This document shows, one piece after another, positions 12,592-13,063 of a stretch of DNA of 64,000 nt (position 1 is the first letter of the stretch; each line of letters opens with the position of its first letter). The notes under the pieces were generated by a model that saw nothing but the letters and a program-made list of their open reading frames with translations, made no database searches and was not told where the DNA came from. Source of the DNA: Salpingoeca rosetta (lineage: Eukaryota; Protista; Choanoflagellata); NCBI GenBank assembly GCA_033442325.1, contig JAWQFM010000009.1, positions 1,688,178-1,752,177 on the forward strand, given 5' to 3'. Both the position numbers and the translations under genes were made by a program.

Positions 12592-12703
12592 CGACAACGG
12601 CAGGACATTCGACAGATCCCCAGCTGCAATGTGCTGGGGTTGCGCTTACGCATTGGCAGATTCGAACCTGCGCGTGCAGAGCACAACGGATTAGCAGTCC
12701 GTC
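12592..12703 (-). pseudogene. 5'-truncated tandem copy of the intron-containing tRNA-Ser(GCT)
   Basis: Anticodon arm, variable arm, T arm, a 55-nt intron (12660-12606), the 3' exon and a T15 tract are retained. The 5' acceptor strand and D-arm (A box) are replaced by unrelated sequence. Offset is about 180 bp from the intact copy. Confidence 0.75.
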
Positions 12704-12758
12704 GCAGCTTAGACACGAGACAGTGAAGGAGTGTGTGGGGAGTAGCCTGGATGGAGAG

Positions 12759-12765
12759 AAAAAAA
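12759..12765 (-). terminator. RNA polymerase III oligo-T terminator of tRNA-Ser
   Basis: T7 on the minus strand 6 nt after the discriminator base. The equivalent T15 lies at 12571-12585 after the second copy. Confidence 0.75.
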
Positions 12766-12771
12766 CAAGTG

Positions 12772-12906
12772 CGACAACGGCAGGACATTCGACAGATCCC
12801 CAGCTGCAATGTGCTGGGGTTGTGCTTGAATTGGCAGATTCGAACCTGCGCGTGCAGAGCACAACGGATTAGCAGTCCGTCACCTTAACCACTCGGCCAC
12901 GTTGTC
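12772..12906 (-). tRNA. tRNA-Ser(GCT): tRNA-Ser(GCT) with a 53-nt intron at T-loop position 59/60 (exon 1 12906-12839, intron 12838-12786, exon 2 12785-12772)
   Basis: Minus strand: GACAACG TG GCCGAGTGGTTAAGGT G ACGGA CTGCTAA TCCGT TGTGCTCTGCACGC GCAGG TTCGAA [53 nt] T CCTGC CGTTGTC G. It has a perfect 7-bp acceptor stem, 5-bp anticodon and T stems, a long variable arm and discriminator G73. Spliced length is 82 nt, and an oligo-T tract follows. Confidence 0.9.
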
Positions 12907-13063
12907 ATATGGCACTTCTTGTTGTTTTGGGGCGAATTTTTTGTTGTTGAACCTAAATCTGTATTCTTGGCTGAATGTTGTTTGCTGCAACAGCCACATC
13001 GCATTCATCCATCCAACCAACCAACCAACCATCCATCCAACTCAAGCAAGCAAGCAAGCAAGC

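Follow-up and report, generated by a model that had tools for sequence, protein, structure and literature searches.

Can a nuclear tRNA gene whose T-loop is interrupted by 53 nt be a working gene and, if so, how would the insert be removed? The question is raised by a tRNA-Ser(GCT) gene of the choanoflagellate Salpingoeca rosetta that lies in a stretch of 64,000 nt, hereafter called the window (assembly GCA_033442325.1, contig JAWQFM010000009.1, here contig 9, positions 1,688,178 to 1,752,177 of the forward strand). To our knowledge, the textbook view is that the tRNA splicing endonucleases of animals and fungi cut only at 37/38, measuring from the tRNA body. Recognition by a motif only is regarded as an archaeal trait that was retained in a few algae. 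An original prediction, made from the letters of the window, had proposed here an intron guided by a bulge-helix motif between tRNA positions 59 and 60, and had considered a choanoflagellate the probable source. The source is confirmed by the spacing of tRNA genes, since distances of 758 and 744 nt between Lys(CTT) genes, and of about 15.8-15.9 kb between two Phe genes, occur both in the assembly and in the published S. rosetta table (PMC6188563, Table S4b). As for the gene itself, we conclude, with a probability of roughly 0.8, that this nuclear tRNA-Ser(GCU) gene is functional and that its intron at 59/60 is spliced by proteins.

The interrupted tRNA-Ser(GCT) gene and its predicted fold

The class II tRNA-Ser(GCT) gene occupies positions 12772-12906 of the window (135 nt) on the minus strand, to which all its features given below belong, and is interrupted in its T-loop. 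The 5' exon (12839..12906, 68 nt; GACAACG...GCAGG-TTCGAA) corresponds to tRNA positions 1-59 and contains the acceptor strand GACAACG, the D-arm, the anticodon arm with GCT, a long variable arm, the T-stem strand GCAGG and TTCGAA. The 3' exon (12772..12785, 14 nt) provides T60, the T-stem strand CCTGC, the acceptor strand CGTTGTC and the discriminator G. Between them lies the T-loop insert, the proposed intron (12786..12838), and its 53 nt do separate TTCGAA from T-CCTGC-CGTTGTC-G as had been read before. The anticodon loop CTGCTAA is uninterrupted; a canonical 37/38 intron was rejected because the insert stands between 59 and 60.

When the exons are joined after cuts at AA↓T and TG↓T (arrows mark the cuts), ARAGORN calls an 82-nt tRNA-Ser(gct) with a perfect and complete cloverleaf and loops of normal size, which is the product that had been foreseen. 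The uncut precursor is not called as a tRNA by this program, which models introns of the anticodon loop only. Neither by default nor with its intron option did it report a tRNA for the window or for the loci of the paralogues. The Rfam tRNA model gives a partial match (12833-12900, 33.6 bits), in which the first bases of the insert make a false T-stem. The exact cut is ambiguous by one base, given that a T flanks the insert on both sides, and cuts at 59/60 and 60/61 yield an identical product. The predicted splice junction joins GGUUCGAA to UCCUGCCGUUGUCG (the latter also written UCCUGCC) in a product of about 85 nt with CCA.

The minimum-free-energy fold of the 135-nt precursor has the T-stem GCAGG/CCUGC with a 3-nt bulge, UGU, on its 3' side, and a helix UUCG(A)/(U)CGAA that joins the T-loop to the 3' end of the insert. 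The 5' strand of this central helix, TTCG (12841..12844), is formed by T-loop positions 54-57 and is followed by AA↓T, the loop with the 5' splice site. Its 3' strand, CGAA (12788..12791), belongs to the insert and is followed by the bulge TG↓T (12787-12785) and then by the T-stem. The motif consists in this way of a helix of about 4 bp beside a 3-nt bulge, with both cuts after the second base beyond the helix, and only 0.5% of shuffled Ser inserts place four Watson-Crick pairs at the required position. The same fold contains a hairpin of the insert itself, CCCCAGC-ACATTGCA-GCTGGGG (12798..12819; CCCCAGC/GCUGGGG in the RNA). The first bases of the insert find no partner in it, so that the outer helix h' is missing on the insert side and the motif falls into the relaxed hBH/BHL class and not into the strict hBHBh' form. 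The fold agrees with what had been proposed for the pairing of T-stem, UGU bulge and TTCG-CGAA helix, for the hairpin and for the missing outer helix. On this modelled structure, the Ser insert is a putative relaxed bulge-helix-bulge (BHB) intron, of the hBH/BHL type, at 59/60.

Other kinds of insert were considered. Rfam found no intron family in the window, and a spliceosomal or group I/II intron was rejected for an insert that starts with TCTGCC, ends with CGAATG and measures 53 nt. A reading of the Ire1/XBP1 type was considered for the insert hairpin, which has CAGCAC and UGCAGC. The target of Ire1 is a 7-nt CNGCNGN loop; the loop here has 8 nt and cuts in it would not rebuild the tRNA, and this candidate was rejected too.

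A T7 run (12759..12765) follows CACTTG, 6 nt past the discriminator base, as terminator of RNA polymerase III (Pol III). It is placed after the 3' exon of the Ser gene and not after the false T-arm, which shows that insert and 3' exon both belong to the transcription unit. The 53-nt insert is free of TTTT, and the B-box GGTTCGAATC(T/C) continues unbroken over the 5' junction. The full-length gene has an intact A-box, B-box, upstream element and terminator, its stems are all intact too, and with these features it appears to be active. The upstream element, CAAAAAATTCG (12933..12943, about -37 to -27), has counterparts of the CAAAATTC type at equal distance from many ordinary tRNA genes of the genome. 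In many of the tRNA genes whose upstream 55 nt were compared (L009-L067), a GCAAAATTYC-like sequence recurs about 25-37 nt before the mature 5' end, and it may serve Pol III as an upstream element of the promoter.

In two independent public runs, contigs (run X1 record 6, covering 12779-12883, and run X12 records 10 and 11) span the insert and both of its junctions without differences, which excludes the assembly insertion that the original prediction had named as a refutation. An artefact of assembly or sequencing would also have to explain why the same structure, with variant inserts, occurs at four other places of the genome, and why the tRNAscan-SE calls made in 2018 on the older assembly are shortened as the insert predicts; its probability is negligible.

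Inserts of the same geometry in tRNA-Phe(GAA) and U6

Four tRNA-Phe(GAA) genes, three intact and one decayed, were found, and all of them carry an insert of 41 nt at 59/60 of the T-loop (contig 7, 861920-862058 and 877874-878019; contig 9, 847868-848011 and 842445-842570; L015-L021). They first surfaced as three identical low-scoring Rfam matches. The 5' part ends in ...CCCAG-TTCGAT, and C-CTGGG-TGACGGC-A resumes 41 nt on, followed by a T-run. Here the motif is a helix UUC/GAA, with three of four pairs of the Watson-Crick type, and a bulge AC↓C, and the insert has its own hairpin, GCCTTC/GAAGGC. Excision at 59/60 gives a perfect 73-nt tRNA-Phe, whose predicted splice junction joins AGUUCGAU to CCUGGGUGACGGCA. 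No uninterrupted Phe(GAA) copy was found by BLAST in the own genome, and a genome search with the pattern of a TGAAGA loop and a T-loop at class I spacing gave only the four known genes, the rest being chance matches. In the published table the same four are the only Phe genes, all of them labelled 'putative pseudogene' (PMC6188563, Table S4b).

Outside tRNA, the U6 small nuclear RNA (snRNA) gene is interrupted as well. It is single in the genome by Rfam and BLAST (contig 9, 815095-815271, + strand; L068:196-372). An insert of 65 nt follows ...CCCCTGCGCA, and the remainder, GGATGACACGC..., comes after the insert, so that the Rfam U6 match covers model positions 1-68 only. The insert has no GT..AG ends and contains a B-box-like GGTTCGATGCC. 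In the fold, a helix UGCG/CGCA stands between the loop of the stem-loop and the 3' end of the insert, with bulges CA↓A and UG↓A; an outer helix, CAAA/UUUG, is present, unlike in Ser and Phe. Cutting at the bulges restores the universal, canonical CCCCUGCGCAAGGAUGAC, and the predicted splice junction joins CCCCUGCGCA to AGGAUGAC.

The three RNAs share one layout, in which the first four loop bases past the stem face the four insert bases lying 3 nt before the return strand, and in which the canonical RNA is restored by cuts that leave two bases next to the helix on either side. The helix has 4/4 Watson-Crick pairs in Ser, 3/4 in Phe and 4/4 in U6, numbers that are reached by fractions of 0.005, 0.08 and 0.004 of the shuffled inserts, respectively. 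Inserts of this geometry in all Phe genes and in U6 support the splicing that had been envisaged from the Ser gene, guided by a motif and independent of position, and the argument for splicing itself comes from the essentiality of the interrupted RNAs. This pattern amounts to considerably more than a single odd gene, and supports an ectopic hBH/BHL intron in a lineage with none known. The inserts of Ser, Phe and U6 are probably functional BHB-like introns, removed by TSEN (tRNA splicing endonuclease) together with RtcB.

In the mechanism that we propose, Pol III would transcribe the whole unit from the 5' exon through the T-run. The T-stem GCAGG/CCUGC of the precursor would stack on the helix UUCG(A)/(U)CGAA of 4-5 bp. 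The 3' splice site would then lie in the bulge UG↓U, and the 5' splice site would be AA↓U, in that part of the loop which directly follows the helix. The endonuclease would read this local shape and cut after the second bulge base on each side, it would not measure from the tRNA body, and RtcB would ligate the exons into the 82-nt tRNA. In terms of structure, 59/60 in the T-arm is the exact counterpart of 37/38 in the anticodon arm, because each of them consists of a 5-bp stem with a loop of 7 nt. Two tRNA_int_endo (TSEN catalytic-domain) genes and one RtcB gene are encoded in the genome. The presence of these genes is what is observed; cleavage, ligation and the enzymes responsible for them are what we infer.

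The TSEN of opisthokonts has been described as relying on the tRNA body and on a ruler mechanism with its reference point at the elbow (PMC10485636). A ruler that measures from the elbow, as described for the human and yeast enzymes, cannot place cuts in the T-loop or in U6. The Xenopus enzyme, however, cuts a bulge-helix-bulge set in an mRNA in vitro (PMC10485636), which makes a motif-only mode plausible in a holozoan. The described dependence on body and ruler (PMC10485636), as well as a relaxed motif without h' and with a Phe helix of 3 pairs only, could speak for a different endonuclease and ligase, or for a stepwise trimming and joining, in place of TSEN acting on a BHB-like motif. We consider this improbable, since the inserts (41-65 nt) lack GT..AG and are far too short for group I/II ribozymes, the splice points match the BHB rule exactly in three unrelated RNAs, the TSEN catalytic genes and RtcB are present, and a eukaryal TSEN is able to use BHB alone (PMC10485636). 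S. rosetta probably splices RNA by local shape, and not by the fixed-position rule that is assumed for animals and fungi.

Gene copies, transcripts and the weight of the evidence

The assembly that was searched comprises 55.4 Mb in 68 contigs, and an older assembly has 3,086 contigs. BLAST with the locus returned five Ser(GCT) copies in the own genome, two full-length and three truncated at the 5' end. Full-length genes are found on contigs 9 and 34 only, their exons are identical and both are interrupted. The contig 34 insert has 56 nt and differs from that of contig 9 in its 5' third (CCTTGATACGAACAAGCAC vs CTGCCAATTCAAGCAC), the 3' two thirds being nearly identical. The same holds among the copies in general, whose inserts have a variable 5' third and nearly invariant 3' two thirds; the stem of the insert hairpin is constant in 5/5 copies, with one variable base in the loop. 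No intron-less Ser(GCT) copy was found by BLAST in the own genome, and a whole-genome search with CTGCTAA and a T-loop at class II spacing gave the five known copies only, with the rest at chance level. An intron-less gene, for which the original prediction had recommended looking, is in this way absent from the assembly. AGY serine codons require tRNA-Ser(GCU). Given this need, and with no uninterrupted gene, the interrupted Ser(GCT) genes must be the ones that do the work.

For S. rosetta, the published tRNAscan-SE table has two Ser AGC/GCT calls only, of 74 and 77 nt (PMC6188563, Table S4b). These lengths fit calls that end just past the T-loop, in the first bases of the insert. The shortened calls, the Phe(GAA) genes listed as pseudogenes and the blank result of ARAGORN bear out the expectation that standard scanners would fail here. 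Our own-genome Rfam tRNA search scored 63 of 498 candidates, missed entire families, among them Gly, Pro and His, and is no census. Thr(AGT) and Arg(TCT) genes, which are absent from the published list, were sought with patterns in case they are hidden, and chance-like matches only were obtained.

The three truncated copies begin at the anticodon stem, one of them in the window (about 12592..12705, minus strand, 178-180 nt downstream of the window gene) and two in tandem on contig 18 (1347004-1347309; L003:1300-1650). They form part of tandem units of 178-182 nt and are without the acceptor 5' strand and the A-box. The copy of the window starts with the anticodon stem, extends as far as the 3' end, and has a variant of the insert and a T-run. 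Judging by what they lack, the truncated copies are probably dead pseudogenes. This class was rejected for the full-length gene, and it is the copy at 12592-12705 that shows its features. As a further observation, their 5' quarter is replaced by a conserved CACTGYCTCGTGTCTMAGCTGYG, and only this 5' part has diverged.

Could all Ser(GCT) genes be dead pseudogenes or a tRNA-derived repeat, with the working gene outside the assembly? The three truncated tandem copies, the flanks common to all copies, an imperfect direct repeat around the insert that resembles a target-site duplication, and the pseudogene label that tRNAscan-SE gives to the analogous Phe genes are in line with it, as is a contig depth of 7-10x that of the flank in two runs, which hints at unassembled copies. 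However, no other Ser(GCT) or Phe(GAA) gene is present in either the 68- or the 3,086-contig assembly, both tRNAs being indispensable, and the same accident would be needed for the single U6 gene too. The full-length genes, moreover, keep A- and B-boxes, upstream element and a terminator past the 3' exon, and excision produces flawless cloverleaves. We find little room for this explanation, and retain the reading of functional, interrupted genes. With regard to depth, contigs of runs X1 and X12 over window positions 12676-12883 reach about 7-10x the unique upstream flank across tRNA and spacer. This exceeds the five assembled copies, so that the array may be collapsed, or else the runs may be RNA.

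Several observations weigh against functional introns removed by splicing. First, the outer helix h' is absent in both the Ser and the Phe inserts, and the 5' splice site is therefore weakly defined. Second, TTCGAA and TGCGCA are both palindromes; if the loop was duplicated at insertion, the helix arises automatically, and complementarity alone is no proof of selection. An imperfect direct repeat, TCGAAT(C)CTGCC ... TCGAATGTCCTGCC, does in fact enclose the Ser insert. A loop-duplication origin also suggests that a new insert could be spliceable from birth. Third, helix and bulge are invariant among the paralogues, without covariation. Fourth, the 3' three quarters of the truncated copies, insert included, are 97-100% identical to the working genes. 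Copies that are presumably dead are in consequence as well conserved as full genes, and the identity of the exons may reflect gene conversion instead of selection.

Finally, two ordinary RNA sequencing (RNA-seq) runs have 8-9 reads each over the Ser locus, from both the contig 9 and the contig 34 genes. All of these few reads carry the insert and none has a joint, and some reads fall in the flanks. Ordinary RNA-seq libraries rarely capture mature tRNA, and 8-9 reads are too few for a test of splicing; the unspliced reads could be precursor, read-through or DNA carry-over. That every observed read carries the insert would also fit a tRNA from which it is never removed and which works with a T-loop expanded by 53 nt. 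In a T-loop, positions 59 and 60 face outward, and insertions at these positions are tolerated by the T-loop motifs of other RNAs. A hairpin of 41-65 nt at the elbow, on the other hand, would clash with the contacts of the ribosome, RNase P and the CCA-enzyme. A retained insert would further demand a U6 catalytic stem-loop with 65 extra bases, and it leaves the conserved geometry of helix and 3-nt bulge unexplained. We regard retention as very unlikely, and removal of the insert by splicing remains our preferred reading.

Relation to known splicing systems

The closest parallel is the red alga Cyanidioschyzon merolae, whose nuclear tRNA genes have ectopic hBH/BHL introns that are spliced, including four that interrupt the T-loop (Soma et al. 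2013, PMC3728597). Both cases are nuclear eukaryotic tRNA genes with an intron outside 37/38, and in both the motif is relaxed, combining a single 3-nt bulge with a 4-bp helix and a loop. C. merolae differs in that it is not an opisthokont, and disruptions affect 63% of its tRNA genes, many of which contain several introns or are permuted, whereas in S. rosetta two tRNA families and U6 were found interrupted. In addition, splicing was experimentally shown in the alga; in S. rosetta we infer it from the genes. Ectopic introns were also reported from the Guillardia nucleomorph, most of which are unable to form a BHB motif (PMC3728597).

Crenarchaeota and archaea related to them typically have ectopic BHB-like introns (PMC4033280), and non-canonical BHB introns at 59/60 occur in Crenarchaeota and others (Marck and Grosjean 2003, as cited in PMC4033280). 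The Ser insert resembles these archaeal introns in position, in the cut after the second bulge base and in that the T-loop UUCG provides one of the two strands of the central helix. The archaeal enzyme is different, being a symmetric EndA that reads the motif only; in S. rosetta the enzyme would be TSEN, with two catalytic-domain genes. The S. rosetta gene differs too in being transcribed by Pol III, with an insert that avoids T-runs. A metagenome scan for interrupted Ser(GCT) genes gave 56 loci, nearly all of the canonical animal type, and one interrupted (L095, the same as L125). This locus (L095:3057-3124, contig Ga0224506_10001325) is a tRNA with anticodon GCT and a 31-nt intron at 59/60, with a helix UUCG/CGAA and a bulge AU↓U. 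Its contig is probably archaeal, to judge from 30% GC, compact open reading frames, a TATA-like box at -30 and TTTT in the intron. The 56 loci of the scan provided no cross-species covariation.

Introns are found in U6 of Schizosaccharomyces pombe and other fungi, where they are spliceosomal, with GT..AG ends. That of S. pombe is reported to be near the catalytic stem-loop and to have a B-box-like element. The U6 gene of S. rosetta is similar in that its interruption is near the catalytic stem-loop, with a B-box-like GGTTCGATGCC in the insert, but it lacks GT..AG ends and has a bulge-helix-bulge geometry instead. With canonical 37/38 introns the Ser insert has in common that it is short, on the proposed reading protein-spliced, and on the 3' side of a 7-nt loop, with a bulge at the 3' splice site next to a helix of loop and intron. 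It differs in standing in the T-arm, at the elbow that TSEN normally uses as reference (PMC10485636).

In the choanoflagellate Monosiga brevicollis, the Phe genes have a normal length of 73 nt, two Ser(GCT) calls (scaffold 10, 212,400-213,300) have an abnormal 74 nt, and five Lys(CTT) 'pseudogenes' of 91-93 nt are listed, with scaffolds 10 and 26 (PMC6188563, Table S4a). These published call lengths hint that the Ser intron is shared with M. brevicollis and that other ectopic introns occur there. Our literature search found no description of such introns in choanoflagellates or other opisthokonts, nor of a tRNA-type intron in U6, in line with the original prediction, which knew of no such splicing system described for holozoans. 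We think it fairly likely that S. rosetta, and perhaps choanoflagellates, have a position-independent, bulge-helix-guided pathway on which three indispensable Pol III RNAs, tRNA-Phe, tRNA-Ser(GCU) and U6, would depend wholly. It would be the first in opisthokonts, with the first tRNA-type intron in a spliceosomal snRNA, and its inserts may arise at palindromic loops (TTCGAA, TGCGCA).

A model organism near the root of animals appears, then, to depend on motif-guided splicing for its only Phe and Ser(GCU) genes and its apparently only U6 gene. If true, the known range of ectopic tRNA-type introns extends into opisthokonts, and the published label of pseudogene on every S. rosetta tRNA-Phe gene is explained. 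Catalogues of eukaryotic tRNAs made with standard scanners can miss essential genes. S. rosetta, being transfectable and CRISPR-ready, offers a system for studying the four-subunit TSEN on substrates beyond the ruler, and may bear on how ectopic introns are gained.

Ordinary introns at 37/38 are present in this genome too, in Lys(TTT), Ile(TAT), Ser(TGA) and Arg(CCT) genes (L010, L012, L013, L014), and ARAGORN mislabels those of Ile(TAT) and Ser(TGA) as Tyr(ata) and Ala(tgc). All Gly(GCC) genes measure about 107 nt by their published lengths, and are thus intron-containing as well.

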